A DNA stretch of 64,000 nt from Lepidodermella squamata (Eukaryota; Animalia; Gastrotricha): contig JBLDXI010000066.1 in assembly GCA_047495785.1 (NCBI GenBank), positions 558,001-622,000 of the forward strand, read 5' to 3'. Below, one piece after another: positions 22,887 to 64,000 of the stretch. Under the pieces are notes generated by a model. It saw only the letters and a list, made by a program, of their open reading frames with translations, was not told where the DNA came from and ran no database searches. The number at the start of each line of letters is the position of its first letter. The stretch's first letter is position 1. Position numbers and translations under genes: made by a program.

Positions 22887-23079
22887 AACGGTTTGACTGA
22901 TATGACAAAGGCCAAATATAGATTACAAAAGCTAGAGGTATTTTCTCATGAATCAGCAGGGAATTTGAAAGTATGGTTGTTTTACACTACGATGTTTGCA
23001 CAGCCGTGTATATGATGATAATTAGAATGTATGAAATAATGTAAAACAAGCTGAATTTTGGATAGCCATACAGAGATAA

Positions 23080-23384: not shown

Positions 23385-23459
23385 CACTGGGTTCATTTCA
23401 ATTAGGCAGTATTTTTTTCAGAGTAGTAAAATTTTCGATATTTCAACATATTTCAAGCC

Positions 23460-37249: not shown

Positions 37250-37780
37250 AGATCGGGAAATTTTCGTTGATCTCTTTGACTATCATTCCAAATATTTAGT
37301 TATGGCTCAATTTCACGGAGTTGGAAATTACCTATAGGCTATAGGATCGCACCATATTACAACATCCGCCAGCAACTGAACTCGAAAGTAGACATCAACT
37401 ATCCATAAACGAAACTGTATAGAAACCGACATTTAACGTCACGCCGGGGGGATCGACATGACGGTTTCAGTTGATGCTGTATTCGCACTCGCGTAAATGT
37501 TGCCTTAATCGAGTAATCTTAATTGGTACACTATCGATTGATAACGGTCGCATAGAAACATATCCAATCGGAACATGTTAGTGTCAAAGCGTTTTTTTGT
37601 GCAAAACAGGTTTAAAAAACATCAAGTGCGAGTTCGAGCGATCGAGTGATTTCGAGGTAGCCGACCCATTCTGTTTACCGCATGCAAGCCCCCGGCAAAT
37701 CTAGCTCGGAAAAAATGGACAGAAATCGTCTGGAAGAAAAGGCGGATCCTACAGGTGCTGTTTCGTCTGAAAAGAGGAAA
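37250..37780 (-). pseudogene. Degenerate family B fragment
   Basis: GMIVKEINENFPI at about 37250-37290 and decayed remnants of neighbouring exons, no continuous frame. Confidence 0.5.
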
Positions 37781-37956
37781 AATAAATCTTCCGGCACTGA
37801 CCCGAATCAGTAAACTAATTCTGTAGACTAATGTTTTGTCTTCCAGACTTTTTATGATTAATTATGCTTCACTCGGTTTATTAATCAAGATATATAGTTC
37901 AGACATCACTGTTGGTAAGCTAATTGGGGTGCGGTCTTTTGGCTGTGTTAGCAACT

Positions 37957-40442: not shown

Positions 40443-40741
40443 CTTCCAGTTTACCCAAAAATTGTTCTTGTTGCTGGGGTACAGCCTGGGTTTGGAAAGC
40501 CTGGGGTTGGAGTGATTCATAATTAAACGCTCGCTCACACCACTGGAGTGCTGAATGAATCAAAACAAATAGCGGATGATCTGCTGTAGTGAGAAAAACA
40601 TGTATATTACAGCATTGACGTCAGAATCCGACGTGTCCCGAATAACATGTCCAGGCTTTTAAACCTATGAACTGTTTAATAGTTTTAGTCTTTCCAGCCA
40701 TAAATCCATTCATTTCTTGTTTCAGTCATACTGGTTGAACT

Positions 40742-40790
40742 CTAAATATTGCCCTAATAAACTTCCTCGACTAACAAAATAGGACGGCGC
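40742..40790 (-). pseudogene. Isolated remnant of the family B last exon
   Basis: Reverse strand TCCTATTTTGTTAGTCGAGGAAGTTTATTAGGGCAATATTTAG matches the VEEVYEGNI exon end, with a frameshift and a GAG to TAG stop. Confidence 0.6.
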
Positions 40791-41300
40791 TGTATGGCCC
40801 TCCCGCTATTGTCTCAAGTGAACGTCAAAGATGCCTACGCAATCATTAAGGCCGAGGCGCCCCCTGTTGCCGAGTTGCGTTTCGCGCTTCGGGCCGATTG
40901 GCCAATATTGGACAGATTTGGCCCAAGAGGGACTTGGGTATATGCAGTTTTTGATATATCCGCCCATCAACTCTCTGAGTTGGAAGAAAAAAAGCCAGCG
41001 GTAAGCCGCCTTGGCCTTGAAGACGGCGTGGAGCTAGATGCGATTGTTGACGATGATGGCGAAGGCGATCACAAAGGTCAAAGTCATAGCTCTGATGGAG
41101 TGACATGAATTGAGACATGCATTTAATTAATAGTCTCAAATAGTCAGCCGCCTTAATTGAGTGGATACTTCAACATATTTCAAAATATTCAAATGGCGAT
41201 TTGAAATTATTAGCAATGAAAGTCAATTGTTTTACTCTTATTTCGAGTCGTCAAGCGTTAAATCCATCACATTTCAAGTTTCAGATATTCTGCCCCATCT

Positions 41301-44130
41301 TTATATATTGCCCTCATAAACTTCCTCAACCATCAGATAGGACGCTCCGCCAACAGTTGCTGCGTACGTTTTGACGAAATTTCCCCACGTAGCGTGATTT
41401 TTCCCAAAGGCCAAAGTGAGCGTGACAGGTCCCGCCGCAATAGGAACCCTGCATATTCCCTCGACTATCAAAGAATAAATTCAAGTTATCTAATTAATGA
41501 TTAATTTAATCATTTACTAACCGACTCTTGGGATCGCGCGGCACAGTCCATACGGCGGAGTATCGTAATGCCACCATGATTCTATAGGCGTCGGATTGGT
41601 GCAGTCAGCCCCATTTATCGTAACGTAAAACCGAACACTTTCAGCGCTTATGTATCCATCCGAACAAAATTCCTGCATCCCGTACCACTTGATATGAAGG
41701 ACGGACTTGCCCTGAAGCTTGTTGTAAGTTCGAGTCTAAACCAAGGAAGAAAATATAATTCTTTTGTACATAGTATTCTTTTCGAAAAAATACCGCGATC
41801 GTGCTCAAACAGGCTGATCCTGCAACAGCTCGGCATCCCTCCGTTATCGAGAAATACCGTCTGTTGTAGTACGGCAGTTGGACAACAGTGCCATCGTTCG
41901 TCAATACTGAATTAGGGATTAAAATATGAATAGAGGATAATTGATAATTGAAAATATATATATATATATATAAATATATATATATATTAAACTTACAAAC
42001 GTTGATCGGCAAATTTTCGTTGATTTCTTCGACGATCATTCCTGCAGGTTTTGAACGGCCAATGTCAATTCCATCGGCAACACCAGCATCAATGTAGCTT
42101 GCACAATTGTGGTCCCACCACACAACAATGTCGTATTTTCCCGCCGGCAAATTACGGCAAACTCCATCAACTATGAAAATTGATGAATATGTCACATTAA
42201 AAGTTGACAATCGTGGAATGTCGACAATATGAAACATAAAACATAAATTGCCATTTAATGTGTATGAACAGTCATCCTTGTGAATTGTAATGATGACCAA
42301 AAAATCCATGAATAAATAAATGAAATCCACGCCAGGGAATCTGAATCTGAAAATATGCATAGGTAAAATTCGCAGCGATTACGCTAATTTCGAAAAACTC
42401 GATTATCGAAAATCGATATTGATTGATTATCGATATATGGATGATCACTTTCCCATACACATTTCAATGAGTTTCAACCAAAAAGTCTTATAGACATACT
42501 TATACTTGAACTTCTCAATTATTCGAAATTGATCAACTTCATTAACTGCGAACAATCCACAAGGTTAAGTTTAACATACGTTCAATTGTGATGCCGTATG
42601 GTCCAACGCGATTTACACCGGGACCGGGGGCGTACTCACGGATAGAAGTCTCGATCGAGTAAGGATTGGCGCATAGTTGATCGTTAATCGTAACATATAA
42701 ACGCAAGCAACGATTGTAAACGTTCATGTTAACAGTGCCCTGCCAGTAAACTCGCAGCAAGGAAGTGTCCGATCGTTTCTTGTACTTCCAGATCGCCCAG
42801 TCTGTTCTACCGCCCGCAGTATTACCATTGTATGTCAATTTGTTCCATTGCTCGGTTACAGTGTTGAAAACCTGGAAAGCACGAATGAATCAACCGTGAT
42901 ATCACCATAAAAATGAGATCCTTACTGTTGCACTTTGACACCTCGCTGTATCATCTGAAATGTTATGAATTGATACCACATTGATTAACACCTTTATAAA
43001 AGAATTTCACCTAGTTTGAATAAGTATTTTGCTGGGACAAATTCCTCGACCCAAATCATATTTGGAGCCATTCTTCCATTTAGATTGCCACTGAAGTCAA
43101 CCCCGCCGCCCTGAACCATCCCCCAGTTGCGATAGTCATAATAGGCCTTCACGTCATATGCCCCAGCAGGAAGTTCATTCAGAGTGCATGGAAATTCGCC
43201 GTGGAATGAATAACCGTGGTATTCGCTTGCGCAGCCATCCAAAAATTCGTTTTGAATGGCCCAGAAAATATTTTCATCACCTGCGCAATTGATTCCATTC
43301 ACGGTCGTAAACACATAGCCGTCTCTAACAGTGTTGGCTGAATTCAAGTTGATATGAATCCAATAAGCAATGAAAATGTGGACTCGAATGTGGGTGAAAT
43401 CATGCTTCTTTGTAAAAGAAGTTGTCTGGAAAAGAAGAAGCACAAAGCCTATTACTAGATGCTTTAAAATTTCCAAAAATACCCATAATTGATATGGTGA
43501 AGAGAATGTTCCACGTATACTGAAAACTTGCCCATTCTGATTGATTGTCACTCGACGCGGATAGTCAAAACACGACGACATCTCTCCTTAAAACGGAACC
43601 GGTTTAGAAGCATTGAAGACATAAAAAATTGTACAAATACCTGCACAATAAGGTGACGTATTTGGGCAATCTTGAACACAAACAGGCGAAATCGCAGTGG
43701 CCGAGGGGGTCGTGACAGCTGGGCAGAAAGTGTCACAGCTATCGATTCCAGCCACGCGATCAGAGACACCTTCGCCAATGCTTTGCGGAGCGATCAGAAT
43801 GCCAGAGGTGAGACTGCCCTCGAGGCGATCGAACCCCATTGCTGTGTCTTTATCTGCTCGCAACAGCCAGCACTCCTGGCGATAGGGAACGTAGAAGGCA
43901 GATCGGCAGGGAGGGTTGTAAGTCGCTAGGCATTTGCTCTGACATTGTTCCTGGCTCGAAACCGTGCGGTTGAACGGCTGAATAACGTACAGGTTGAAAG
44001 CAAGATCGGATAGGTCCACATTCAGAGCTATTTCCTGTGGTTGAAAGTAGCTCGAGCATTTTCCTCGCATTATCATTTCAGCATTCATCGGGACCACCAG
44101 CCCTGCAAATATAAGTAGCAGAGGCGCCAT
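41301..44130 (-). CDS. Family B copy 4
   Basis: MAPLLLIFAG start, same exon series, EEVYEGNI end. Confidence 0.8.
41954..41987. repeat. (AT)n microsatellite in an intron
   Basis: ATATATAT... run with one interruption. Confidence 0.9.
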
Positions 44131-50248: not shown

Positions 50249-53200
50249 TCAATGTACATTTTTCGACTTATAATGACCATGAGCAAGCGTTGTTACACCA
50301 TCATCACAAACCCATCGTTTGTCATCGTATGGGCACAGAGCGAGTTTTGTACATTGCATAGTTACTAGCTGATGATTGAAGGATCGGATTTGATTGAATG
50401 TAGCTTTTGTTAAGACATGTTTTAATACACAATTTTTATAATTTTCAAATTGTATTTGCTTTTTTACGCAATGTTTAACGACACCCTTAGCTTTCTTTAC
50501 CGATGTCTCCTTATGGAGTTCTGTATTTTCTCCAGTCGTTGAAATTACTTCAGATTTGAAGCTATAGGATTTCGATCTCAAGCCAACGAATTCAGTAATA
50601 GTAGAGAGTGTTATACCTCCTGCACTTTCGTCTTTGAACTTACCAATAACTTTCTTGTTAACGTTTGAATGTAATGCATGGTCCTTAGGGTAGTCGCTAA
50701 AGTCCATCACCTCTTTATAACTTTCTATATCCTTATATATATCCTCGGCTTGTACGTGATAACACAACGAATCTGTGTCTGTGAATAACAGCTTTGCCTT
50801 GTCACCATATTTCTTCTTGATCACATTGTAATGAAAATCATACATCAATGTCTTTGACAATTCTAAAACGCTGAAACCTACGATAATCGGGCGATCGAAT
50901 TTAATAGATGTCTTTGCCATATTTACGCTGCACAAATCTTCGGCAATCACTTTGGCATCTTTGAAATTTGGCTTGTTTATCAATTTTTGTAACTTATTGG
51001 GCTGAGTAACAAGTCTGATGTCCACTCTCTTTCTAAGGTTCTCCATGGTCTTTCCAAACACTGCATTATTCAACAGCTTGAAGAAATCTTTCTCAAAATC
51101 ATTCCTAGCTTCACTTCTCTTTTTCGTATTGAAATCAATATAAGGTGCCAACCATTTCGATTGGCTGAAGCTTAGAACCTTATGCACCTTCTTTAAAATC
51201 AAGCCATTCTCCAGAGCCTGCTTCAGATTTCTATAATGAATGACGTAGTTTGTCTTATCATTGAGATTTTGTGTCAGTTTTGTTATAGATGGCGGTTTTG
51301 ATAAATTCAAATTCTGCATGACAGTTTGCATATACGGACTGGGTTCGCAAAATGTTTGTTCGGGACAAAATGGATAATCATTATGAATATCATGTAAGGT
51401 ATTAGGATATTCTAAATCTACCATTAATATATATCCCGTATCATCGTCCTCACCTAAATTCAATATAAAATCTGTGGTAAATCTGTCCAAGTTCTTTTCC
51501 CATTTGTAACGACCTAATGGCAAGGCTTGCGACATGGCATAGCCATACAGATTATTTGCATCCAGGTATAAAATATACGAGTCCGGCTTCGAGTAATCAT
51601 ATTCAACCATGTATTTATTATTCGCTCCAGCGTATCTATGAGTGATTATGCTGACCCCACCGCGAATTCCCTCCTCTACAAATGTTAACATATCTTCATT
51701 CTCCAATAGTTCAATTCGAACACCAGTTTTCTTCAACATAGCATCCCACGACAAACTTGGCGCTGTTAAATAATGAGCAGGGTCCAATGTGTAATACTTC
51801 ATACATGTATCTCTGAAACTCTCGAAACAGTCGGCTAAGAGTAAAACATCGGTTTTCAAAAAAAGGCTATGATAGTCTTTGAATTGTTGACATCGGAATT
51901 CTTTATATACGCGTTTGGCATGTTCATAATCTTCCTGCGATATTGGTACTCGCCCTGATTTCCCATCAATCGAACTCGAGTGGAGACTGGTAGAGAAATG
52001 TTCCATATCAGGCAGTGAAGGCTCCTCCAGTTTTTCAGGACCATCTATATATTCATACGGATAGAATCCCTTTTGTTTTATCAGGTCAAGTTGTAAATCT
52101 GTTAATCTTGGAAACTGGTTTTTCAGATGAGGGAACCCACCGTTCGATTTTTTCAAATTCTGTACCAAATCAGCTAAACTTACCGGCATGAAGTTGAGGC
52201 TGTCTATGAACCTCAATCGGCCAATGCTGAAAGAGATGTATTTCTCAGAACTATTTGCGATGGTTCCTATCTGTAACAAACGTTTCTTCACATGAGATTT
52301 CTGCTCCTTCGGCAATTGCTCCCATTCTGATATTCTTTTATTATTAATTTCTTCTATTACCTTTCCCGCTGCTTGTAAAATCAAATGTGCATCATAACCT
52401 TTCAAATTATGAAATACTACTGGAATATTGATATTCCTGTAGCTGTATTTCAAATTGCAGAAACTATGAGCTGCGCCTCTGTAATAGCCTGTCAAATGAT
52501 CATGATCTCTCACTTTTTTCCATTTTTCCGACTCATCTGCAAAAGCTCCTTTACAAATATGGCATTGTGAAGCTTTGTTATATTCTGTTTTTTGCTGCCC
52601 TGTCAGCGTCATTGCTTTATTAGTATTCCTCAGATATGAAGTCAAGAATGATTCCTGTTTCATCAGATATTTAAGAAATTCTTCGGTGCATTTCTCGCCC
52701 TCGAATGTTTTATACCTCGAGTTAATGCCTTCGACATCACTTGAAAGGTAAACACCGAAAGAGTTCGCTTCATGTTTTTGATAAATAGTGGAGCTGGCAC
52801 CCTTTTTCTGATTGGTCTTCACGAGAAAACTCTCTGCGTCACAATAAAATGCAAAAGGGATTTTCAACTGCTTGGCGTAATTTTTGAAAGTAACCGATTC
52901 ACCCTTAGGCATTTCAACTTTCACTTTTCCATCTTTCTCATTACACTTCTTTTCATTGACATGATGTTGCCTGGATTCATCGCTATTAAAACCCTGAAAG
53001 CATCTGAAACACCAGAATCGCTTATGCTCATGCTTGTTAACTCCTGCCAACAGTGCACTAGGATTCTTGATCCAGCAGTAATGTGCTTGCTTGTTCTCAA
53101 CAATTCTGAGAAGATTTACTTCTTCTTGAAATTTCTTATCTGAAACGTAAAACGGGAAGAGGACCTCCTTGTCGATTTTCCCGCATTCAATGATATTGAT

Positions 53201-54490
53201 GCGTATTTCATTCAAGTCTTCCAATTTCGATATGTCTTTTATGCTAATCGGGAAAGCTATTCCGTCGGTATTAATTGTCTTTTCAAAGTTCATATATTTA
53301 GAAACCCGATATGCATGATTGTCAAATTGATGCCGCGAAGCGAGAATGCTCCATACGATACATTTATTATCTGATTTGTTTTGAACGTTAATGACTGCTT
53401 TTTTATTCGCAATCCATTTTGGTGTCTCTAAGTAAGAACCTGCTGCTAATGGCTTGTATGTAAACGTGCATACACTTGTATTTCCTATTCCTATCAGCGT
53501 CCCACCTGTCTCTCGTTGATGATACTCTTGAATGCTCGAACCCATTTGTGTGAACATATTATCCACAATACCAGGAATATCGTCCTGATTTATAATTGTT
53601 GGAGCTTTCTCATTCGATGAGCTCCATTGGTATGTTGGAACACCGTTATTCTCTTGGTAGTAAAGTGATGTATACAGCACTGCTCTTACTGGACCGCGCT
53701 GGTTAATTAGTTTCCGATACTCGTTAATAACCTTGGGCTTGATTTTCTTTGCATATTCGTAAAAATCGATTTCACAATTATTTGTTGGCTCTATGTCCGT
53801 GCGAGTGAGAATATTTTTGAAATGCCCAAAGTCATCTATTTTAACTATATGAAAGTAATCATCTTTTTCCAAGCTATTGGTGCTTTGAACGTATTTATAT
53901 CCATTGGCAATCAGTTGATTAAATTTATCCCCATTAATTTTGATTTTATTCATTGTTTTGGGGTTGACAACAAAGCCATCCTTTTCCTGTCTTTTGCACA
54001 TCCTATTTGAATCATCTTTTATTGCATATCCTTGTCTTCTAAAGCTTTCATATCTATCTCCTCCAATCACGATAGGCTTCCCTGTAATCGGATCGAATAC
54101 GTAACCATCTCTGATTCTACTCTTGTATTTGGTTAATATGTTATTTTTGGAATCGTAAGCGTGTGTATTTCGAACCAACTTGATAAACTCTCGTGATCCA
54201 ACTTCTATCTTTCTATTGTTTAAAATGGTGACTTTCTTTAGTTGGTTTCTATACTTCTCATATACGTAATTACCATTTACCAACTGATTGAATATATCAC
54301 CATTAACAGGGATCAACTTTCTATTTTCGGGATTTAAAACATGTTGAACATATGGATGTCCATTCTTATACCATTTACTACCCGTTTCATCGTATGAAAA
54401 ACCGTCTTTAATATACTGTTTATAGGCTTTTCCACCTTTTTTAATGGGGAAACCCTTCGGACCAAGTATGCTCAAATTTTCGTTACTCAT
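50249..54490 (-). CDS. pPolB: Protein-primed family B DNA polymerase (1413 aa) with N-terminal repeats, OTU-like region, zinc finger and endonuclease VII-like insert
   Basis: Exo motifs YCDAES, FHNLKGYD, FIDS; pol motifs YLDANNLYG, KLLNNAVFGK, FTDTDS; DNKC...HY OTU-like dyad; CHIC...VRDHDHLTG.YRGAAH..CN insert. Confidence 0.97.
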   Translation of the reverse strand: MSNENLSILGPKGFPIKKGGKAYKQYIKDGFSYDETGSKWYKNGHPYVQHVLNPENRKLIPVNGDIFNQLVNGNYVYEKYRNQLKKVTILNNRKIEVGSREFIKLVRNTHAYDSKNNILTKYKSRIRDGYVFDPITGKPIVIGGDRYESFRRQGYAIKDDSNRMCKRQEKDGFVVNPKTMNKIKINGDKFNQLIANGYKYVQSTNSLEKDDYFHIVKIDDFGHFKNILTRTDIEPTNNCEIDFYEYAKKIKPKVINEYRKLINQRGPVRAVLYTSLYYQENNGVPTYQWSSSNEKAPTIINQDDIPGIVDNMFTQMGSSIQEYHQRETGGTLIGIGNTSVCTFTYKPLAAGSYLETPKWIANKKAVINVQNKSDNKCIVWSILASRHQFDNHAYRVSKYMNFEKTINTDGIAFPISIKDISKLEDLNEIRINIIECGKIDKEVLFPFYVSDKKFQEEVNLLRIVENKQAHYCWIKNPSALLAGVNKHEHKRFWCFRCFQGFNSDESRQHHVNEKKCNEKDGKVKVEMPKGESVTFKNYAKQLKIPFAFYCDAESFLVKTNQKKGASSTIYQKHEANSFGVYLSSDVEGINSRYKTFEGEKCTEEFLKYLMKQESFLTSYLRNTNKAMTLTGQQKTEYNKASQCHICKGAFADESEKWKKVRDHDHLTGYYRGAAHSFCNLKYSYRNINIPVVFHNLKGYDAHLILQAAGKVIEEINNKRISEWEQLPKEQKSHVKKRLLQIGTIANSSEKYISFSIGRLRFIDSLNFMPVSLADLVQNLKKSNGGFPHLKNQFPRLTDLQLDLIKQKGFYPYEYIDGPEKLEEPSLPDMEHFSTSLHSSSIDGKSGRVPISQEDYEHAKRVYKEFRCQQFKDYHSLFLKTDVLLLADCFESFRDTCMKYYTLDPAHYLTAPSLSWDAMLKKTGVRIELLENEDMLTFVEEGIRGGVSIITHRYAGANNKYMVEYDYSKPDSYILYLDANNLYGYAMSQALPLGRYKWEKNLDRFTTDFILNLGEDDDTGYILMVDLEYPNTLHDIHNDYPFCPEQTFCEPSPYMQTVMQNLNLSKPPSITKLTQNLNDKTNYVIHYRNLKQALENGLILKKVHKVLSFSQSKWLAPYIDFNTKKRSEARNDFEKDFFKLLNNAVFGKTMENLRKRVDIRLVTQPNKLQKLINKPNFKDAKVIAEDLCSVNMAKTSIKFDRPIIVGFSVLELSKTLMYDFHYNVIKKKYGDKAKLLFTDTDSLCYHVQAEDIYKDIESYKEVMDFSDYPKDHALHSNVNKKVIGKFKDESAGGITLSTITEFVGLRSKSYSFKSEVISTTGENTELHKETSVKKAKGVVKHCVKKQIQFENYKNCVLKHVLTKATFNQIRSFNHQLVTMQCTKLALCPYDDKRWVCDDGVTTLAHGHYKSKNVH

Positions 54491-54596
54491 TCTTATATAA
54501 TATTATATTAAGAAAATATTTCTTTAAGTAAAATTCTCCCTGGTAAAGCTTAAAATTATTTTCTCTTTATAATGTATATATATAAGAAAATTCAGA
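54491..54596. promoter_or_regulatory. Divergent AT-rich promoter region with inverted TATTTTCT...TATAAT...TATATAAGA modules
   Basis: Same motif order precedes the pPolB ATG (minus) and the 54597 ATG (plus). Confidence 0.5.
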
Positions 54597-54890
54597 ATGG
54601 ATTCAAACAATAAGAAGCCGAGAGGTAGACCCAAAAAATATTTGACGGAGGAAGAAAGGATATCAGCATATAAGGAGGTTCATAAAAACAGTTGTAAAAA
54701 GTATTGGCGAGAAATATCAAACATGGCGAAATTGAGTGATATGCTGCTTAACACGACAGAGAAATTGTTGGTTATTTCCGAGAAACAATTGGAGGAAATT
54801 GTCGGTAACATTATTGCGAACAAATTGAGAAATTGTTCTCACTTCAAAATACGTAATGTACACATAATAAATAACGCAAAAGATGAATGA
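54597..54890 (+). CDS. Small AT-hook protein
   Basis: KKPRGRPKK AT-hook followed by a helical region. Confidence 0.7.
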   Translation: MDSNNKKPRGRPKKYLTEEERISAYKEVHKNSCKKYWREISNMAKLSDMLLNTTEKLLVISEKQLEEIVGNIIANKLRNCSHFKIRNVHIINNAKDE

Positions 54891-54898
54891 ATTACTCA

Positions 54899-56452
54899 TC
54901 AATCTATAAGATTTTCGGCTTTCTCCCATGTGGGATGATCATAGCCCGCCCATTTAATTAACACCATTTCCTTACCTTTAACCGTTTTCTTTTGTAATAT
55001 CTTCTCAACGCGGTGAATGCTGTTGTCGTATAAATCATTTTCGCTTATTTTAGATTTCAATAGCTCTTGCTCATAGAAACTTCCGACTACTTCCTCGCCA
55101 TCTAATGCTCTCAATTTATACGTTCTAGGGTATGTATCATTGATCTTCACTATTCTTAACAACTCTTCAGACCAATTAGGATGAAAACCCTTTTCGAAAA
55201 GTTCTTTAATTCTACTAATCCTGACAATGTCGTTTACCTTAAATTTTGGCTTTTTCAATTTAGGCGGGGGGTTAGGGTAGAGACTTCGTAATACTCTATC
55301 TTTATTGATCGGATTCACTGCTTCGGATGGGGTCATATTAATAGATCTATGTTCCTTATTGTTATATTCATCTAATAAGGAATCTATCATATCGATCCAC
55401 TTTCGAGTATTTTCAAGAGTAAACCTCTTCCACATCATTGTTTTCAGTGTTCTATTAAATCGCTCTATGATTGGGTTATGGAAATTCTCGTACGTTGAAT
55501 ACCTGATGACTTCATTTGCTTTCAGCCATTTTGTGAAAGTTGAGTTGTAGAATTCACTACCTTCATCAACCCAAATATTCTTCGGTTTTCTTTTACTCTT
55601 GTTGATGATAGTTGTGAAAGCATCAAATACAGTTTTAGCGTCTTTAGTTTTCAACGGGACAGCCCACGCATATTTGGAAAAGCAATCAATAACAGTTAAT
55701 AGGTATTTATAGCCTTCGTTGTCATCAGCTAGATCATTCATGAAGCACAGATCCATACCCCATGTTTCGTCCACATCGTGAAGAATTACTCTGCGCCGCG
55801 GGAATCTCTTTCTAGCCGGTTTGTGTAACTCATCAGCTAAAATGGGAAAATTCACTTTGCTTGTTCCCCTATTCATCTTCTCTATCGTGCTGTCCTTATC
55901 TGATTGAAGCTTGAGTTTTTCAGCGTTTCCTGCTAATTTCTTCTGCTGTCTTTTCGGTTTTGAAACTTCACCGATATATTTTGTTGCAGTATAATCCACA
56001 GGCTTTCGTTGCCGCAATTCGTATCCTTCACCATGGCACTCGTCTTCCCGACGCTCGTATCCTGTAGGCATTCGGCCTCCATGGAATTTATCGGCTAGGC
56101 CTCCTTCGTGGAAGGTTTTGTATACGAACGCCGCCATGGCTCTCTCGTATCCGCTTTTCGAATTGTCGTTGGCTATCTTGAAGGCTTCATCGGCTAGAAT
56201 TCTGTCCGCTCTTGTCCTCATTTCTCGATCTTTATATTTCCAATAGTAATAGTCGTGAACTTTAGCTGCCTTGTCCAGATCATTGATGCCTTCATATCCT
56301 TCCTTCATTCGCTGGACGAAATTTGTACCTGGTCCAGCGTAACTATACTTCTGCGTGTTGTTGAATGATCCGCGGGGACGATATTCACCTTTGACCGGGT
56401 AAGAGGGGAGATGCAATTCTACCGGCAAGTTATTGATAATTCCGTCGAACAT
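54899..56452 (-). CDS. INT: Parvovirus-type phospholipase A2 + RVE integrase + chromodomain fusion (517 aa)
   Basis: YAGPGT...INDLDKAAKVHDYYY...AD; DDE triad WGMDL / WVDEGSEF / IERFNRTLK; C-terminal VEKIL...VLIKWAGY...TWE. Confidence 0.95.
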   Translation of the reverse strand: MFDGIINNLPVELHLPSYPVKGEYRPRGSFNNTQKYSYAGPGTNFVQRMKEGYEGINDLDKAAKVHDYYYWKYKDREMRTRADRILADEAFKIANDNSKSGYERAMAAFVYKTFHEGGLADKFHGGRMPTGYERREDECHGEGYELRQRKPVDYTATKYIGEVSKPKRQQKKLAGNAEKLKLQSDKDSTIEKMNRGTSKVNFPILADELHKPARKRFPRRRVILHDVDETWGMDLCFMNDLADDNEGYKYLLTVIDCFSKYAWAVPLKTKDAKTVFDAFTTIINKSKRKPKNIWVDEGSEFYNSTFTKWLKANEVIRYSTYENFHNPIIERFNRTLKTMMWKRFTLENTRKWIDMIDSLLDEYNNKEHRSINMTPSEAVNPINKDRVLRSLYPNPPPKLKKPKFKVNDIVRISRIKELFEKGFHPNWSEELLRIVKINDTYPRTYKLRALDGEEVVGSFYEQELLKSKISENDLYDNSIHRVEKILQKKTVKGKEMVLIKWAGYDHPTWEKAENLID

Positions 56453-56473
56453 TTCACAATGTTTATAACAGCA

Positions 56474-56487
56474 TTAGAAATTTCTAA
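56474..56487. promoter_or_regulatory. Palindromic double TCTA element between divergent integrase and ATPase genes
   Basis: Perfect palindrome TTAGAAATTTCTAA gives TCTA 12 nt before ATG 56499 and 22 nt before ATG 56452. Confidence 0.6.
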
Positions 56488-56498
56488 TTGGAATGTAA

Positions 56499-57209
56499 AT
56501 GATCAATTTTGATTCAATAATCCCAAAAAGCGAGTATTCGCCGCTAAATATCTCTCCTTTTTACCCGCAGCATTGTTTCCGAGCAATTATTATCGGTCCA
56601 AGCAATACCGGTAAAACTAATGATTTGCTCAATATCATTCATAATTCGGTTTTTCATAAGCTGTACATTTACTCTAAAACTTTGGATGAAGACAAATACC
56701 AGTTCTTGATAAATTTGCAGAAAGCTAAAGAAGCCGAGTTGAAAATGAAAGGAATAAACGAGTCACTTATTCACTTTTCCACAGATATAGCAGATGTCAT
56801 GCCCCTTGATAAGCTCGACAAGAAGTATCAGCACTTGTATGTCTTTGATGATATTTGCCTGGAAAATGCTAAGAGCCAAGAGAAATACATTGGCGATTTG
56901 TTTATTAGGTCGCGAAAGTACAATTGCTCCGTGGCATACTTGAGCCAGTCATATTTTAAAATTCCCAAAATAATTCGTGACAATGCGCAATTCCTCGTTT
57001 TGAAAAAGTTGACTGACGGGCGGGAACTTCCGACAATTCACAGAATTCACGCTGGAGAAATCGGAAAGGATGAATTCATGAAAAAGTACGAACTAAGCGT
57101 TTCGTCATATAACAATCACGGGTCTTTTATAATTGACAGCGTAATAAAACACAAGTCGCTGAAACTGAGGGCAAATTATACAGGAATATTTTACGGCGAA
57201 CCTCTGTAA
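56499..57209 (+). CDS. A32/FtsK-like genome packaging ATPase
   Basis: Walker A GPSNTGKT, Walker B LYVFDD, RSRKYNCSVAYLSQSYF, IRDNA. Confidence 0.95.
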   Translation: MINFDSIIPKSEYSPLNISPFYPQHCFRAIIIGPSNTGKTNDLLNIIHNSVFHKLYIYSKTLDEDKYQFLINLQKAKEAELKMKGINESLIHFSTDIADVMPLDKLDKKYQHLYVFDDICLENAKSQEKYIGDLFIRSRKYNCSVAYLSQSYFKIPKIIRDNAQFLVLKKLTDGRELPTIHRIHAGEIGKDEFMKKYELSVSSYNNHGSFIIDSVIKHKSLKLRANYTGIFYGEPL

Positions 57210-57231
57210 GTAAAATCTAGTCTTAATTCAA

Positions 57232-58395
57232 ATGCCGATCAAAGAACTCTCAATCACCGAACAAATAAAAATTTTAGAGCAATTAGATAGAGAAGAGAAG
57301 TTGTATGATAAAAACCTCGCGCTTGCAAGTCGCGATTCTTATGCGCTCAAGCACAAATTTGGGGTGGAAACCGAACCGAGCCCACTAACAGCCATTCAAA
57401 CAGCTATCAACCAACGACCAACCACCGATGCAATACGTAATTTGCAAAATTCGATCAAGGAATTAGTTGTTAAAAAGAAACCACCAATATTTAAGCACAG
57501 CACTCCATCTATCTCTGCCTCCGCATCCCCTGTAGCTTTAAAAATCCCTAAGCTTGAGTATGAGAGCCCTGAAAAAAGTAGGTTAGTCTCTTCGCGAAAT
57601 TCAGAAACTGATGAAAGTGAAAAAGATTCTGATTCTGACTCATCGAAGGAGAATGAGGATGCCCAAGAAGGGACATATGACACTGAAGAAATGAATGCTG
57701 TCATCCGTCAGCATAATTTCCCTACAATTGAAAAAATTAAACAAGAAGACATAGAAGAAGCCGTGGTAAGTTTGGCCACATACAACAGACAGGTCTTAGG
57801 GGTTAAGCTCTCTAATCTGACTCGAGCAGGGAAAAGAGATTCAGATGACTATAATAGAATTAAGCGCGACATTGCAGTTCTGAGGGACTATCGCGAAAAA
57901 TTAAAAAGCAAGCAGCTAGGTGAGGGTTTCACCAAACCAACCCCAAAAAATCTCCGGAAGTTTGGACGATTTTACGTACGCAAGGAAGATTTACATGATG
58001 GGTGGCTCCGGGTCAGAAAAAAGAATCAAGGCAGAGTGTTTGATGAGCAAATTTCTGATGGCGTGAGAAATCTCATTTTGAAGCGATATGAACCGAAAAA
58101 GTACAAATACACCCAAGAAGATTTGTCTCATTTTCAAGACATTTGTCGCAGGACCGGATACAAACCGAAACCTCACTCCGGCGTAAAATCTGAACTCGTC
58201 ATTTCTAAGCAGTCTGGTTCTGCGCTTTTTGTGACATTGCAGGATGCGCAAAGGCGAATGCTGCACTGTTTGGGAGAAATTAGAGCAGGTAATAACAATG
58301 AAGAAATTAGGAACGAATTGGTTTCTATTGCGGACTTGTTGCTGAAGCATGGTAAAATAACGAAGGAAGAATATAAAACTGTGTGTAGCATATAG
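57232..58395 (+). CDS. Polinton conserved protein (putative core protein)
   Basis: 387-aa ORF in the structural module; C-terminal LGEIRAGNNN motif familiar from Polinton ORFs. Confidence 0.65.
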   Translation: MPIKELSITEQIKILEQLDREEKLYDKNLALASRDSYALKHKFGVETEPSPLTAIQTAINQRPTTDAIRNLQNSIKELVVKKKPPIFKHSTPSISASASPVALKIPKLEYESPEKSRLVSSRNSETDESEKDSDSDSSKENEDAQEGTYDTEEMNAVIRQHNFPTIEKIKQEDIEEAVVSLATYNRQVLGVKLSNLTRAGKRDSDDYNRIKRDIAVLRDYREKLKSKQLGEGFTKPTPKNLRKFGRFYVRKEDLHDGWLRVRKKNQGRVFDEQISDGVRNLILKRYEPKKYKYTQEDLSHFQDICRRTGYKPKPHSGVKSELVISKQSGSALFVTLQDAQRRMLHCLGEIRAGNNNEEIRNELVSIADLLLKHGKITKEEYKTVCSI

Positions 58396-58419
58396 GGAAT
58401 TATCTAGTTTCAAATAAAA

Positions 58420-59166
58420 ATGAGTCTGAGCCCGATTTTCTTACCACTAGAGTATCTTTCAAATAATCGAAGTTCTCGAAATAACACCATCGACCGATAC
58501 CTCAATGATAAAATAGACTTCACTGGAAGACGAATTGCAGTTAGTTATATTCATTTCAGCGACACGTTTCACAACGTTTCCGCTCGTTATGGTAATAATA
58601 TATTGGAATACTCACTAAATGACGATATTTACGAAGTGGTTTTCCCCGATGGGACTTACACCTTTCAAGATTTTAACAATTACCTGCATTTTCAGATGAA
58701 GTTGAACGGCCATTTCACTGTTGACAACGCAAGAGGAGTAGACATTTTTGGCATAAATATAAGTGTCAACACCGTTTTCAGTTGCGTAAGTGTGAGGATT
58801 TTAGAAAATTATTCTTTGATAGTAGAAACTGAAGCTATGGCCCGGTTTCTCGGGGTCAACATAGGCTCATATGAGCGCGATTTCAATTCCCAAAACGTCC
58901 CTGATGTGACTATGGGGCTGGATACAATGTTTGTTCATTGTTCCGTGGTTAATAATAGCGTAATCCCCGAATACAACACGGTGATTTTTACATGCCCTAT
59001 CAACAAAAAATTTGGGGAACACGTCAACTACATTCCGAACGAGAAAAGGTTCCTAATGTGCACAAACGCGAATACGCAAAATATTCGAATTTGGCTTACT
59101 AATCAAGAAGGAAACGAGATTTACTTTGTGGAAAATAGATGGGGGATAGGTATAGATATAATCTAG
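58420..59166 (+). CDS. Minor capsid protein (penton, single jelly roll)
   Basis: Size and position; NVSARYGNN, FPDGTYT, FVHCSVVNNS, IRIWLTNQEG motifs. Confidence 0.85.
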   Translation: MSLSPIFLPLEYLSNNRSSRNNTIDRYLNDKIDFTGRRIAVSYIHFSDTFHNVSARYGNNILEYSLNDDIYEVVFPDGTYTFQDFNNYLHFQMKLNGHFTVDNARGVDIFGINISVNTVFSCVSVRILENYSLIVETEAMARFLGVNIGSYERDFNSQNVPDVTMGLDTMFVHCSVVNNSVIPEYNTVIFTCPINKKFGEHVNYIPNEKRFLMCTNANTQNIRIWLTNQEGNEIYFVENRWGIGIDII

Positions 59167-59190
59167 TGCTTATCTAGTTATTGCTGAATT

Positions 59191-59493
59191 ATGAATAATC
59201 GAAAAAGAAAGCGCGTTTACATTTCTGGTCGAGGATTCGTCGATGTTGGTAGAAACATTTTATCCAAAATAATAGCAGCATCAACTGAACCAGCTCAAAA
59301 TTTTGTCAAAGCAGCGCTGAAAACTGGGTCAGAAGCTGCAGGAGATAAAGTGGGAAGTTTCGTAGCAACAAAATTGACTGAAAAAGTGCTGCCTAGCTCT
59401 GACACAGCTAATCTTAAAGCCATAGAGGAGCTCGAGCGCAAAATTAAAAATAATATAAATTCATACTCAGGCTCTGGATTTAAAAAAATCTAA
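59191..59493 (+). CDS. Small basic/amphipathic virion core protein
   Basis: RKRKR, ISGRGF and YSGSGF protease-site-like motifs; directly upstream of the major capsid gene. Confidence 0.65.
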   Translation: MNNRKRKRVYISGRGFVDVGRNILSKIIAASTEPAQNFVKAALKTGSEAAGDKVGSFVATKLTEKVLPSSDTANLKAIEELERKIKNNINSYSGSGFKKI

Positions 59494-59507
59494 TCCTTTG
59501 GTAAATT

Positions 59508-60887
59508 ATGCTTCAACAAGAGATCGTCAATAACCTCTTCGAGACTACTGAAATTCAAGATCGGGTCTTTGAGAAAAAGACATGGACGGAAACGCCAGCA
59601 CAGAATTTCACTCAAGATCAAAATTCACAACCCTCGAAATTAATATTTTCCAGCTACAACCTAAAAGACAATTATTTACAAGTCAGAGAGGGGTACTTGG
59701 AGTTTAATTTGCAAATTAAAAGGAAGAATGGAGCCGCGTTCGTGAATACTGACAAGTATGCCATTCGGAATCACGTTTTGAGCCTGTTTGACAATATTGA
59801 AGTTCAAATATCAGATTCAGATCACAAAATCGAGGAGCTGCGGTTCCTCGAACATTGGGCGAACATCAATTTTCTTTTGAAATGGAGTCCTGATTACGCC
59901 AATAGTTTAGGGGAAGAAGTCCTGTTTTCGAAAGACTGCCCGTTGGCTTTGGGAAGCACAACGCTAATTGCTGATGTGACGGCTGACACTTTTGACGCAT
60001 CGAAAGCTGCAGCTAACAAGGGTTTGATAACGCGAAGCAGCTATGTTAAATCTACCGAGGCCACCGTCACTTTATATCTGAAAGATTTGCCCTTTTTCAA
60101 TTCGTATCATGGAATTTTCACGAAGTCTCGATTTAGGATCATTCTCACTCCGAACTATAATCGGCCTTTGGTTTATGTGATTGTCGCGGCTGATACAGGT
60201 ACACCTGAAGGATTAACCTATCATTTCAATCGGGCTAATATGTACATCCCAGAGGTAACACTAATGAACCAACAGAAACTTTCAATAATGAAAAAGTTCA
60301 ACGAGGGATTCACCAAAATTCATAAATGGATATCAATCGATCCGTATCAGTCCAGCCAGTTTGCTGCAAATACCATGAATATTCAGTACACAATCAGCAC
60401 TGAAATAAGGAAACCAAATTGGGTGTATATTGTTCTTTGCCCCGATTACTCAGACGAGGAATATCCGAAGAAACTCACGCAGATATATAACACGTGGAAC
60501 ATTACTTCCTATTCCCTTTTGATTAATAACAAAGAAGCCTTTAATGAATCCAATGTTTCTTTTGCTAAGCTTAAAGCTCACCGGCTATACAATTACATAA
60601 AACAGAATATGCATCAGAACAGCGATAGAGAAAGTCTGAATACGGGATGTCAGATTTCGTACATGGAATTCTGCAACTTGTACAGAATTCTTTGCTTTTG
60701 CTTGGACGACGTAGATGCTACTTCCATTTACAATTCTCGAGCAGATAACACTGTATCTGTAGTATTCAAAGCGACGGTCGGCGTGGTGAATAAGCCTCTT
60801 GTGATTTATTCGTTCATTGAGAGGGAAAAAGAGATATGCTTCAACTACAAGCATGACTCTGTTGACATCAGTCTTACTAGCGTATAA
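59508..60887 (+). CDS. MCP: Major capsid protein (double jelly roll)
   Basis: 459 aa, beta-rich; GYLEFNLQI, SLFDNIEVQI, KPNWVYIVL motifs; position in module. Confidence 0.85.
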   Translation: MLQQEIVNNLFETTEIQDRVFEKKTWTETPAQNFTQDQNSQPSKLIFSSYNLKDNYLQVREGYLEFNLQIKRKNGAAFVNTDKYAIRNHVLSLFDNIEVQISDSDHKIEELRFLEHWANINFLLKWSPDYANSLGEEVLFSKDCPLALGSTTLIADVTADTFDASKAAANKGLITRSSYVKSTEATVTLYLKDLPFFNSYHGIFTKSRFRIILTPNYNRPLVYVIVAADTGTPEGLTYHFNRANMYIPEVTLMNQQKLSIMKKFNEGFTKIHKWISIDPYQSSQFAANTMNIQYTISTEIRKPNWVYIVLCPDYSDEEYPKKLTQIYNTWNITSYSLLINNKEAFNESNVSFAKLKAHRLYNYIKQNMHQNSDRESLNTGCQISYMEFCNLYRILCFCLDDVDATSIYNSRADNTVSVVFKATVGVVNKPLVIYSFIEREKEICFNYKHDSVDISLTSV

Positions 60888-60912
60888 TGAGAAATTTCTA
60901 ATCTAGCGGTAA

Positions 60913-61542
60913 ATGAGCCATAAGTATTTCGAATACGAGTTGCCTCTGACAGATGGTCAGCTTGAGAAACTTCAGAGCGCAGTAAAGAACAAAAAATCCA
61001 TAACACTGAAATTCAGCAAACAGGTCATTAGTGAGAAGGACAATTTACGAAAGTTGATGCTCACTAGAACTCAAATAAACAAAATAGAGAAGCACAAATC
61101 TAATGATACCGGTGTTCAATTGAAGCTTAGTTTATCACAACTGAAGAAAAATCAATCGGGCGGGCTACTCCCCCTCCTGCCCTTACTTGCGAAAGCCGCA
61201 ACGATTGCTGCACCACTAGCCCTAAGTGCTGTATCAGGGCTGATAAATGGTGCAACCAACGCGATCGGTAACAAATTAGCGGGGAGAGGCGTAAACGAGA
61301 CCACCGTACAACTATCAGTTCCCAAAAATGATCTGAATGAACTATTCAAAATGGTCGATATGCTAGAAAATAAGAATTTATTGCCATTGGGCAGCAAACT
61401 TTCAATTGATCGCGATATTGAGCAAAAGGGTGGCTCATTCGTAGTCCCACTAGTTGCTAGCCTTCTAGGGACATTTTTACCTACATTGTTCAAGGCGAAT
61501 CAGGGAAGTGGGGTTTATTTACCATGGGAGTCAAAAAACTAG
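60913..61542 (+). CDS. Polinton conserved protein with GG-preceded amphipathic segments (putative membrane-lytic core protein)
   Basis: LTDGQLEKL, LTRTQINKI, QSGGLLPLLPLL, QKGGSFVVPLVASLL. Confidence 0.7.
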   Translation: MSHKYFEYELPLTDGQLEKLQSAVKNKKSITLKFSKQVISEKDNLRKLMLTRTQINKIEKHKSNDTGVQLKLSLSQLKKNQSGGLLPLLPLLAKAATIAAPLALSAVSGLINGATNAIGNKLAGRGVNETTVQLSVPKNDLNELFKMVDMLENKNLLPLGSKLSIDRDIEQKGGSFVVPLVASLLGTFLPTLFKANQGSGVYLPWESKN

Positions 61543-61973
61543 GGCGTTTCTTCCCACTTTCGAATTCGGACATTGACAAAATGATGTACTCGAGAGTTGG
61601 GAAGAAGTACAACGGATGTTACCCCAGGCATCTCTTGCCTATACATTTGAAAAATGGATACTATGTAATCAACTTAGATGATTTTGGAGGGGGAACGCAT
61701 TGGGTAGGAATGCAGGTAACTGATAGGGAAATAATTTATTTCGACAGCTTTGGCTTCATTTGCCCTAATGAAGTCATGGAGAGGCGAAGTAATCGCGACA
61801 TTTGGTATTCCACTCACGAAATTCAGCACATAAAAAGTGTGGCGTGCGGCTTTTACGTAGTTTACTTCTTGTCTGAGCTGGCGAAAAAACGCAATAAGCT
61901 GGAAATACTCCTCGATTTCACGAATGATGGGTCCATTATGAATGATAACAGGCTGAAAGATCTTATGTCTTAG
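61524..61973 (+). CDS. Adenain-like cysteine protease
   Basis: GTHWV, YFDSFG, IQ...CG catalytic H-D-Q-C order. Confidence 0.93.
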   Translation: MGVKKLGRFFPLSNSDIDKMMYSRVGKKYNGCYPRHLLPIHLKNGYYVINLDDFGGGTHWVGMQVTDREIIYFDSFGFICPNEVMERRSNRDIWYSTHEIQHIKSVACGFYVVYFLSELAKKRNKLEILLDFTNDGSIMNDNRLKDLMS

Positions 61974-61978
61974 CAAAT

Positions 61979-62122
61979 ATGTACTGTTTGAAGTGTAAGA
62001 AGCATACTGGAAATTTGAACGAACAAAGAAAATTTACGGAAAACAAGCGAGTAATTTTAGTGAGCGATTGTCAAATTTGCGGCTCTAAGAAGAGCCAATT
62101 TGTGAAAGCACTTAGAGCCTAA
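61979..62122 (+). CDS. Small zinc-ribbon protein (DUF5679-like, 47 aa; absent from ORF track)
   Basis: MYCLKCKKHT...DCQICGSKKSQFV. Confidence 0.75.
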   Translation: MYCLKCKKHTGNLNEQRKFTENKRVILVSDCQICGSKKSQFVKALRA

Positions 62123-62145
62123 AGTAGTAAGTGCTTTCACAAATT

Positions 62146-62622
62146 ATGGATGAAGAATTCGAATATTGCCTCTCTCTTCTAGCCGAAATCGAAAACAAGA
62201 TTGTGAAAAGCCAGTTGAAAACCGAGTGTGAACTCTGCTCATCACTTCTGCAAATTGATCACCATCTTTATATCAATTTTTGTCCTAAATGTGCTATCGT
62301 TTATCCTTTTACAGATTATTATCAAAGGGTTAGGCGCTCCGAACCTTACAGGCGAAAATGGCACCTCATGGCTAAAATCAGAAAATTAGGACTAGTTCTG
62401 AAATGGTATGAGCTCGATAACATCATGACTCACTTCAAGAAAATAGATAAGCTCTATTCCACGGAATTTCCTGGTAAAAACATGGTCAACGTAGAATTTG
62501 TGCTTAAGTACGTTTCACTGAAGCTCGGTTACGAAAACGTCGCTAATAAAATCACTCTGAACCGTTCTAGGGATACGATATTACGTTGGCATGAAAAATT
62601 AAATCTAATCAGTTCTTATTAG
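62146..62622 (+). CDS. VLTF3-like (poxvirus A2-type) late transcription factor
   Basis: CELC...CPKC zinc ribbon then YRRKWHL, FKKI, KNMVNVEFVL, LGY...I...RS pattern resembling VLTF3 YKRxxHF...KNFLxYxYVL. Confidence 0.65.
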   Translation: MDEEFEYCLSLLAEIENKIVKSQLKTECELCSSLLQIDHHLYINFCPKCAIVYPFTDYYQRVRRSEPYRRKWHLMAKIRKLGLVLKWYELDNIMTHFKKIDKLYSTEFPGKNMVNVEFVLKYVSLKLGYENVANKITLNRSRDTILRWHEKLNLISSY

Positions 62623-62627
62623 TTGAA

Positions 62628-63341
62628 ATGAAATCTAGTTCAATTTTTATTCCCAGCGAATGGTCAGGAGGTCTACATGGCTCCGATTTATACCTACGTG
62701 CGGATGGAAAGAAAGGGTTTATGAGTAATTTGAATGCAAATAATTTCAAAATTGAAAACCTTGGCCGCCCCGTTTTCGACAATGATGCAGCATCGAAATT
62801 GTGGGTTGAAGAAAACACATTGAATGAAAAAGAATCCAGGCGGCTGATCGAATCGTATAAGCCGCTGCAGTACGCTGATGACAGAACCATCGACATGAAT
62901 GGCGGTCGAATAACAAACGTGGCATACCCTATAGCTCTTTTTGACGTAGTCAACAAGCAATACGTTGACGGGCAGGTATTTTCAGGCTCCGGCGAGGGTC
63001 ATGCGAGTGACCAAACGCAAATGGTGGTAACAAGGGTTATAACCCACACATTACTGGTTCAAATTAATGACGAATTGTCTTTTCTCGAAAATATTCTGGC
63101 TAATGTGCAATTTTGGTTTAGAGTTTGGGGAAATGTCTCACCTGGTTGCACTTGTGATTTCATGAAAAACGGCAGCGTCCTAATTTCCAAATATTTTTCA
63201 TTCGATTACGAGGCGATCCGTAATATAGCTGAATACTGTACTTTCGTAGAACAGTTTGAGAAAGGTGACACTTTCAATATCGTGATGTCTTCCAGCAAAC
63301 CTATGCCCGTTGAATTTTACTTGAAAATATCTAATTTTTGA
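62628..63341 (+). CDS. Fibre/spike-like protein
   Basis: Two fibre-type repeats LNANNFKIENLGRP...DAASKLWVE and IDMNGGRITNVAYP...DVVNKQYVD, then a beta-rich head. Confidence 0.65.
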   Translation: MKSSSIFIPSEWSGGLHGSDLYLRADGKKGFMSNLNANNFKIENLGRPVFDNDAASKLWVEENTLNEKESRRLIESYKPLQYADDRTIDMNGGRITNVAYPIALFDVVNKQYVDGQVFSGSGEGHASDQTQMVVTRVITHTLLVQINDELSFLENILANVQFWFRVWGNVSPGCTCDFMKNGSVLISKYFSFDYEAIRNIAEYCTFVEQFEKGDTFNIVMSSSKPMPVEFYLKISNF

Positions 63342-63347
63342 TAAACG

Positions 63348-63968
63348 ATGAATAGCAGTGATACACAAGTTCATGTGCGAGCTGAGAGTAGTCAGATCTA
63401 TCCAACCGCACCACGCCTATCATTTCCTAGTTCACCAGTGCAAGAATTCAGGCTCTCTGAACTGCGGCGCCTGAAAGAATTTTTGAACAAAGAGATGGAA
63501 ATGAGGTACAAACTATATAGAAAATATAAAAAATGGGCTAAAATCTGTTCGAAATTAAACATTGGTTTAACTGGCGTATCAATCTTGACAGGAATCGGCG
63601 GAATTGGTGTCCTTACTACTGTTGCCGGAATTCCTATCGCAGTTATCCTAGAAGGAGTTGCACTTGGTGGAGGATTTATTAGCATAATTGTGAACTCCGC
63701 GGCGAGTGCCTTGGAAGAGAAAGCCCAGAAGCATGAACGTATATGCACGCTGGCTTCTTCCAAGCTCAACTCGCTGGGTGACATGCTCGCGAAAGCTTTG
63801 GAGGATGGAAACATCACTGAAACTGAATATAATTTGATTATAAAAGAGCATGATAAGTACGTTGATTTGAAACAAAGTCTCAGGGGAAGCCTGAAATTCC
63901 CAACAGATGATGACATGAAAACGCGTATATTGTCTCAAATCACCCACTCGAAATTCAAAAAAAGTTGA
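63348..63968 (+). CDS. Polinton conserved hydrophobic-hairpin membrane protein with N-terminal PTAP motif
   Basis: YPTAP, FRLSEL, two Gly-rich hydrophobic helices, ALEDGNITETEY. Confidence 0.75.
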   Translation: MNSSDTQVHVRAESSQIYPTAPRLSFPSSPVQEFRLSELRRLKEFLNKEMEMRYKLYRKYKKWAKICSKLNIGLTGVSILTGIGGIGVLTTVAGIPIAVILEGVALGGGFISIIVNSAASALEEKAQKHERICTLASSKLNSLGDMLAKALEDGNITETEYNLIIKEHDKYVDLKQSLRGSLKFPTDDDMKTRILSQITHSKFKKS

Positions 63969-64000
63969 TTGATTGATGGCTTGCCATTTCGGGGCCATCG

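Follow-up and report, generated by a model that had tools for sequence, protein, structure and literature searches.

A 64,000-nt stretch of the genome of the gastrotrich Lepidodermella squamata (contig JBLDXI010000066.1 of assembly GCA_047495785.1, forward-strand positions 558,001 to 622,000; hereafter the window, whose own coordinates are used throughout) contains a Polinton/Maverick-type element in which nine of 14 genes carry a sense-oriented TCTA box at a narrow distance upstream of their start codons. The visible part of the element spans positions 50249 to 64000 and continues beyond the right edge of the window; none of the 14 open reading frames (ORFs) counted in it appears broken, and no internal stops or frameshifts were seen. 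The boxed genes encode an A32-like packaging ATPase, the capsid protein, a fibre-like protein, the integrase and five unnamed ORFs, i.e. virion genes wherever a name can be given, which supports a virion-gene class. The integrase has a parvovirus-type phospholipase A2 (PLA2) domain, which would be expected for an enzyme borne in the virion. From the motif, its position and orientation, the presence of two promoter-word classes and the gene identities, we infer a promoter function and, with it, a timing, a polymerase and a factor: slightly on the better side of even, in our estimate, the box is the gene-proximal promoter or initiator of a co-regulated class of virion genes and is read by an RNA polymerase II (Pol II)-type enzyme that is steered by an element-encoded factor.

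The TCTA box and its position at gene starts

The nine boxes are longer than noted in the original prediction and consist of an A/T-rich run, TCTA, a purine and a T. TCTA, the following A or G and the T at +5 are each present in 9/9 boxes. The five columns ahead of the core are A/T in 43/45 cases, with a single C across the seven columns ahead, and the downstream flank is weaker (31/45 A/T in the five columns after the core). The gap between box and ATG is 12-22 nt overall and 12-15 nt at 7/9 sites. The boxes (TCTART, with R for purine) and their genes are as follows, with protein lengths in amino acids (aa).

54899 to 56452, minus strand: integrase, 517 aa, with a PLA2-like N-terminus, an rve core and a C-terminal chromodomain (Pfam)
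56473 to 56478, minus strand: box of the integrase gene, gap 22 nt, left half of a 16-nt palindrome
56483 to 56488, plus strand: box of the ATPase gene, gap 12 nt, 18.4 bits
56499 to 57209, plus strand: A32-like packaging ATPase, 236 aa (PF04665 Pox_A32, 1.6e-7)
57216 to 57221, plus strand: box of the 387-aa ORF, gap 12 nt, within a 22-nt spacer
57232 to 58395, plus strand: 387-aa ORF, by position possibly a minor capsid protein (no Pfam, PHROG or PDB match)
58403 to 58408, plus strand: box of the 248-aa ORF, gap 13 nt
58420 to 59166, plus strand: 248-aa ORF, function unnamed
59162 to 59178, plus strand: paired boxes of the 100-aa ORF, at 59162 (gap 25 nt, 11.5 bits) and 59173 (gap 14 nt, 9.9 bits), the distal one scoring higher
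59191 to 59493, plus strand: 100-aa ORF, function unnamed
59489 to 59494, plus strand: box of the capsid gene, gap 15 nt, overlapping the stop codon of the 100-aa ORF
59508 to 60887, plus strand: double jelly-roll major capsid protein (MCP), 459 aa (AlphaFold2 (AF2) model and structure match)
60897 to 60905, plus strand: box of the 209-aa ORF, gap 12 nt, overlapping a second TCTA at 60902; at 18.5 bits the best in the window
60913 to 61542, plus strand: 209-aa ORF, function unnamed
62604 to 62609, plus strand: box of the fibre gene, gap 20 nt, inside the VLTF3-like coding sequence
62628 to 63341, plus strand: fibre-like protein, 237 aa (phrog_2710 tail fibre, 2e-10, and further fibre families)
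63330 to 63335, plus strand: box of the 206-aa ORF, gap 14 nt, inside the fibre-like coding sequence
63348 to 63968, plus strand: 206-aa ORF with weak Myb/CII-like hints

All eight plus-strand TCTA coordinates of the original prediction (56483, 57216, 58403, 59173, 59489, 60897, 62604 and 63330) are correct, as are the gaps of 12, 12, 13, 14, 15, 12, 20 and 14 nt to the ATGs at 56499, 57232, 58420, 59191, 59508, 60913, 62628 and 63348. The same holds for the integrase box on the minus strand, with its first T at 56478 and a distance of 22 nt to the ATG at 56452, and for the doubling of the box before 59191 (extra copy at 59162) and before 60913 (extra copy at 60902). The palindrome formed by the two divergent boxes is perfect and measures 16 nt (56473-56488) instead of the 14 nt given. 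A near-copy of it (92%) was identified at 60887-60902, ahead of the 209-aa ORF, where there is no gene on the minus strand; as sequence features, the palindrome and its near-copy hint at a dimeric binding protein. Tiny upstream reading frames are located between box and start at the divergent pair, namely an ATG-stop just before the ATPase ATG (56489-56498) and a 3-codon frame beginning directly after the integrase box (56453-56474). Two further full matches to the box, at 62632-62639 just past the ATG of the fibre-like gene and at 61097-61104 inside the 209-aa ORF, have no long ORF start at the usual distance.

Enrichment of the motif over shuffled, AT-matched and host upstream controls, which had been proposed, was found as a positional excess at nine of 14 genes. 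Within positions 1 to 50000, 3.1% of all ATGs have a TCTA ahead of them with a gap of 11-22 nt, and the share is 3.4% in an AT-matched background (upstream AT of at least 65%). The binomial P for 9/13 boxed element genes is ~1e-11, and 0/5000 shuffles reached nine boxed genes (maximum five), both tests using a list of 13 genes that preceded the inclusion of the 47-aa zinc-ribbon ORF. Among long ORF starts on the host side, 2/30 are boxed (Fisher P = 1.2e-4 vs the element). A k-mer screen of every word in the 40 nt ahead of each of the 14 genes, with no word given a priori, returned TCTA, ATCTA and TCTAAT as the top 4-mer, 5-mer and 6-mer, respectively (best P = 3e-8, or ~1e-4 when corrected for 4096 words). 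In a cruder family-wise test, any 4-mer reached nine genes in 11/3000 shuffles, in each case an A/T-only word. A leave-one-out weight matrix ranked 7/9 held-out sites 5th-8th among 27,600 positions, and the top seven matches of the all-site matrix in 128,000 positions (64 kb, both strands) are sense-oriented sites upstream of element genes.

WWTCTART is not enriched across the window (35 occurrences vs 27 ± 5.6 in shuffles), and the signal of the box is thus purely positional. TCTA is depleted on the sense strand inside genes (33 vs 46.9 ± 5.4). Avoidance of the word within genes was considered as evidence and is uninformative, as the depletion ranks 12th of 256 words and other TA words are equally depleted. 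A chance origin, by which TCTA would arise from composition in AT-rich, stop-codon-rich spacers, could appeal to this unspecific depletion, to the lack of window-wide enrichment and to the TAR of the box being a stop triplet, but is scarcely credible: it was rejected by the shuffles, the binomial test, the k-mer screen and the leave-one-out ranks, the latter two in agreement, and three of the boxes lie in or across coding sequence and not in spacers.

Relative to the previous stop codon, the position of the box varies between 18 nt before the stop, within the upstream ORF, and 10 nt after it. Even the two boxes embedded fully in coding sequence and the one that spans a stop codon keep their distance to the ATG. 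Furthermore, the integrase and ATPase genes, which open the divergent units, are boxed though no gene ends upstream of them, which makes the box a start signal and not an end signal. The narrow distance to the ATG, set against the variable distance to the stop, bears out a genuine, directional motif that is bound to the starts of genes. A scan for bacterial-type promoters and terminators remained at or below shuffle level.

Unboxed genes and the TATA-like word

The remaining five genes and their associated signals are as follows.

50249 to 54490, minus strand: protein-primed family-B DNA polymerase (pPolB), 1413 aa (PF03175 and PF02945 on the middle third), no TCTA box
54491 to 54499, minus strand: TATA-like 9-mer of a putative second promoter class, abutting the pPolB ATG (exact-copy search in 64 kb)
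54579 to 54587, plus strand: second copy of the TATA-like 9-mer, 9 nt ahead of the ATG of the AT-hook ORF
54597 to 54890, plus strand: AT-hook ORF, 97 aa, divergent from pPolB (PF02178 AT_hook 0.018, weak), no TCTA box
61524 to 61973, plus strand: putative cysteine protease, 149 aa (weak matches to Peptidase_C5, 0.03, and C48, 0.06), no box
61979 to 62122, plus strand: zinc-ribbon ORF, 47 aa, DUF5679 (PF18930, 8.5e-10, above cut-off), no box
62097 to 62145, plus strand: inverted repeat, perfect over 18 nt, with a loop of 13 nt and its end at the VLTF3-like ATG
62146 to 62622, plus strand: VLTF3-like zinc-ribbon factor, 158 aa (Pfam matches of its family and AF2 fold), no box at the usual distance

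In agreement with the earlier claim of absence, the genes for pPolB, the AT-hook protein, the protease, the zinc ribbon and the VLTF3-like factor all lack a TCTA box at distances of up to 40 nt. The genes for pPolB and the AT-hook protein are separated by a 106-nt AT-rich divergent spacer. The TATA-like 9-mer has just two exact copies in the 64 kb, both of them in this spacer, one directed at pPolB with a gap of 0 nt and the other at the AT-hook ORF with a gap of 9 nt. Judged by sequence and placement, the 9-mer looks like a second promoter class. The protease ORF overlaps the 209-aa ORF by 19 nt; 5 nt separate it from the zinc ribbon, and another 23 nt lie between the zinc ribbon and the VLTF3-like ORF. 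Read-through of transcripts that start at the box at 60897 probably serves these three genes. Their missing boxes are not explained by tight spacing, since the next two genes, with spacers of 5 and 6 nt, carry embedded boxes.

As RNA, the inverted repeat at 62097-62145 folds into a hairpin of -27.6 kcal/mol (z = -6.4; 0/200 shuffles equally stable), the only strong hairpin in 16 kb. Its first arm is the 3' end of the zinc-ribbon ORF, the second arm abuts the VLTF3-like ATG, and the base of the stem includes the start codon; with this layout, the hairpin could gate translation of the VLTF3-like factor or mark an RNA end.

Element proteins and the host flank

The element encodes the Polinton hallmark proteins pPolB, rve integrase, double jelly-roll MCP and A32-like ATPase. 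Within the Polinton morphogenesis module, MCP and ATPase were matched and the protease was recognised by the two weak matches listed above only; none of the ORFs could be identified as the minor capsid protein. The middle third of pPolB matches PF03175 DNA_pol_B_2 (2.4e-9, above the curated cut-off) and PF02945 (9e-5); as a whole protein it gave no polymerase match in Pfam or PDB, the domains being found only with the thirds searched separately. An endonuclease-VII-like insert is present just ahead of the polymerase domain, and the 600 N-terminal residues are without a recognisable family. The integrase matches PF00665 (4.8e-14), PF08398 (3.8e-8) and PF00385 (2.4e-7), and its N-terminus, ahead of the rve core, is PLA2-like of the parvovirus VP1 type, with YxGxG and HD present. 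The combination of PLA2 and chromodomain suggests a virion-borne enzyme that may also target chromatin. The AF2 model of the capsid protein (predicted local distance difference test (pLDDT) 65) matches the Sputnik MCP (3j26) at 6.5e-14 and also the mavirus MCP (6g43/6g44) and the iridovirus and PBCV-1 capsids; 14 relatives of the protein were identified at 39-85% identity. The ORFs of 387, 248, 100, 209 and 206 aa had no sequence match in Pfam, PHROG or PDB that would name them, and a search with the ATPase for a virophage comparator in the phage collection gave no match.

The presence of a VLTF3 gene in the element, as originally claimed, is accepted with moderate confidence on the basis of Pfam matches of relatives and the AF2 fold. 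Ten members of the VLTF3-like family were found, nine of them by exhaustive search (E = 1e-35 to 1e-7), and 3/10 match PF08792 A2L_zn_ribbon (5e-5) and PF04947 Pox_VLTF3 (5e-4). The best matches of the AF2 model (pLDDT 83) in a viral structure library (BFVD) are VLTF3-like proteins of nucleocytoplasmic large DNA viruses (NCLDV) and TFIIB, the viral matches including Megaviridae, Pandoravirus, TetV-1, Clandestinovirus, an entomopoxvirus and B385R of African swine fever virus. The residues encoded by the two embedded boxes recur in related proteins, with K-L-N-L-[IVA] near the C-terminus of 4/9 VLTF3-like relatives (one a 74-aa fragment; a fifth is degenerate) and I-S-[SR] near the C-terminus of 2/3 fibre-like relatives. 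These conserved C-termini are compatible with conservation of the embedded boxes, and equally with constraint on the proteins. Residues 106-139 of the VLTF3-like protein are also matched by a 1373-aa protein (P0009) in seven separate stretches, as a repeated segment.

The left 50 kb of the window is host flank, with tandem intronless 7tm_7 chemosensory-receptor ORFs and a RING ORF. Five tandem intronless 7tm_7 (gustatory-receptor-like) ORFs are located within 10181-14550 and 21533-24584, a NACHT/NB-ARC-ankyrin ORF at 4819-7176 and three PAN-domain ORFs within 35680-44130. By its predicted gene content, the flank looks like that of an invertebrate animal and not like human DNA, and the 7tm_7, NACHT/NB-ARC-ankyrin, RING and PAN-domain ORFs bear out the animal host assumed in the original prediction. 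No second copy of the element was identified within the 64-kb window by tblastn or blastn.

Candidate readers of the box

A TCTA tetramer with A/T-rich flanks is located upstream of genes in the giant virus CroV (Cafeteria roenbergensis virus), in its virophage mavirus and in type 4 endogenous mavirus-like elements, and only endogenous virophages with this word respond to CroV (PMC8547959, PMC5294985, PMC10945749). In CroV it lies upstream of 124 late genes (PMC5294985), its location in CroV and mavirus being described as 5' upstream or within 100 nt (PMC8547959, PMC5294985). The Lepidodermella element shares with these systems the TCTA core and A/T-rich flanks upstream of many genes of a small element with pPolB and rve integrase. 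Thus, of the late promoter of CroV/mavirus type that had been proposed, the core word and AT-rich flanks match the published descriptions, and the likeness is limited to these 4 nt, the flanks and nearness to the ATG. In contrast to the flagellate systems, the host is an animal, 9/14 genes are boxed with a TATA-like word at the polymerase gene instead, the element has its own VLTF3-like gene and no helper virus is in evidence. The gene complement of pPolB, rve integrase, A32-like ATPase, double jelly-roll capsid protein, putative cysteine protease, VLTF3-like gene and PLA2 domain resembles that of Group 1/2 Maverick-Polintons (Polintoviricetes; 10.64898/2026.06.19.733378, PMC11131425). VLTF3 has already been published for a Polinton subgroup, stony corals included (PMC11131425), and the phospholipase domain for animal Polintons (10.64898/2026.06.19.733378, PMC11131425). 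No promoter word for animal Polintons was reported in the searched literature, in which the papers linked to TCTA concern Cafeteria only. Another small element, PgVV-14T, likewise shares a short word just before start codons with a giant virus, PgV, but in that pair it corresponds to an early motif of the helper, on which infection experiments showed the element to depend, whereas here a late motif is matched and no helper is known (10.1101/2022.07.28.501842).

In the reading we favour, the box would be private to this Polinton and mark a co-regulated class of nine genes, each with its own transcription start ~12-22 nt before the ATG and hence with a very short leader. The TATA-like class would serve pPolB and the AT-hook ORF from their divergent spacer, and the protease, DUF5679 zinc ribbon and VLTF3-like ORF would be reached by the read-through described above. 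The box would most likely be read by nuclear host Pol II, with a factor from the element guiding the enzyme there; the foremost candidate for this factor is the TFIIB/VLTF3-like zinc-ribbon protein, followed by the AT-hook protein. This reading is drawn from sequence, its transcript starts being predicted, and several observations weigh against it. The VLTF3-like protein of the window is short, a Pfam scan up to E = 1 gave no match to it, and its fold is matched with modest scores (E = 5e-4 to 0.1, TM score 0.4-0.5); NCLDV VLTF3 proteins pair with viral polymerases rather than host Pol II. A box is missing at the protease gene, which normally belongs to morphogenesis, and present at the integrase gene, a pattern that does not fit a clean early/late split. 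AATAAA and other canonical poly(A) signals are absent at most gene ends of the element, which bears on the assumed transcript shape, and the single element copy in the window gives a single-locus view of the box.

The alternatives rank in the order of a plain host initiator, dependence on a helper virus and RNA processing. General Pol II machinery might read the box as an initiator (Inr) without an element factor, in which case the likeness to CroV would reflect convergence or shared Pol II heritage; we regard this as a serious though clearly less probable explanation than steering by an element factor. The box lies at or near the expected start. With the A of TCTA as +1, the pyrimidine ahead of it, the purine that follows, T at +3 in 9/9 boxes and C or T at +4 in 8/9 fit the Drosophila Inr TCA+1GTY (N-T-Y), and the W at +3 of the human BBCA+1BW is present as well, but at -1, where both consensus forms have their central C, 9/9 boxes have a T (PMC5580651). 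Hallmark genes of coral Polintons are transcribed in ordinary RNA-seq samples without a known helper (PMC11131425), which agrees with a host initiator and argues against dependence on a helper. On the other hand, the invariant four-letter core with its A-rich run is stricter, and far more uniform, than usual host initiators, no consistent TATA was found ~30 nt upstream of the boxes, and the 30 host-side ORF starts show the box at chance rate only, albeit with few ORFs and uncertain true starts.

It appears unlikely that the box is read by the late machinery of a Nucleocytoviricota virus for which this animal, or a cell inside it, serves as host. The core word and AT-rich flanks equal those of the CroV/mavirus late promoter, a promoter match predicts helper specificity in Cafeteria, and very short leaders, as predicted here, together with the missing poly(A) signals would suit such a reader; in addition, Polinton-like viruses are reported to occur with entomopoxvirus occlusion bodies in insects (PMC11296320). 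However, a core of only 4 nt says little about any specific helper, no giant-virus sequence was present within the 64-kb window, and the element has its own VLTF3-like gene, a nuclear-type integrase with a chromodomain and a separate TATA-like class for the polymerase, whereas in mavirus-type elements the word is reported across upstream regions generally. The fuller proposition that an integrated animal Polinton keeps the late-promoter grammar of a protist virophage because its virion genes are switched on by the late machinery of a large DNA virus, in the animal or in its resident cells, we rate as improbable, a shade more so than the reading of the box by such a machinery as such. Less probable still is a signal at the RNA level, by which the box would function on a long polycistronic transcript in processing, in reinitiation or as an acceptor for splicing or trans-splicing. 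Spacers of only 5-25 nt, the lack of own poly(A) signals at most genes and the splicing of late genes in related adenoviruses are in line with it, but the first gene of each divergent unit is also boxed, and the splice-acceptor variant was rejected, as no AG is present between box and ATG at 4/9 sites and the box is preceded by a run rich in A instead of pyrimidines.

Polintons are common in animal genomes; to our knowledge, no Polinton virion has been seen, and we know of no established mode by which their capsid genes are expressed. Taken together, a private, strictly placed word at the virion genes, another word for the polymerase and a VLTF3-like factor encoded by the element itself would make up a two-step programme, as in large DNA viruses. 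Should the helper-driven reading hold instead, the element would be virophage-like and possibly protective in a metazoan. The word shared with CroV and mavirus bears on a common inheritance of late transcription among virophages, Polintons and giant viruses, and also on the debate between 'virophage-first' and 'nuclear-escape' scenarios. Furthermore, the box could serve as a marker for elements that are still regulated as viruses.

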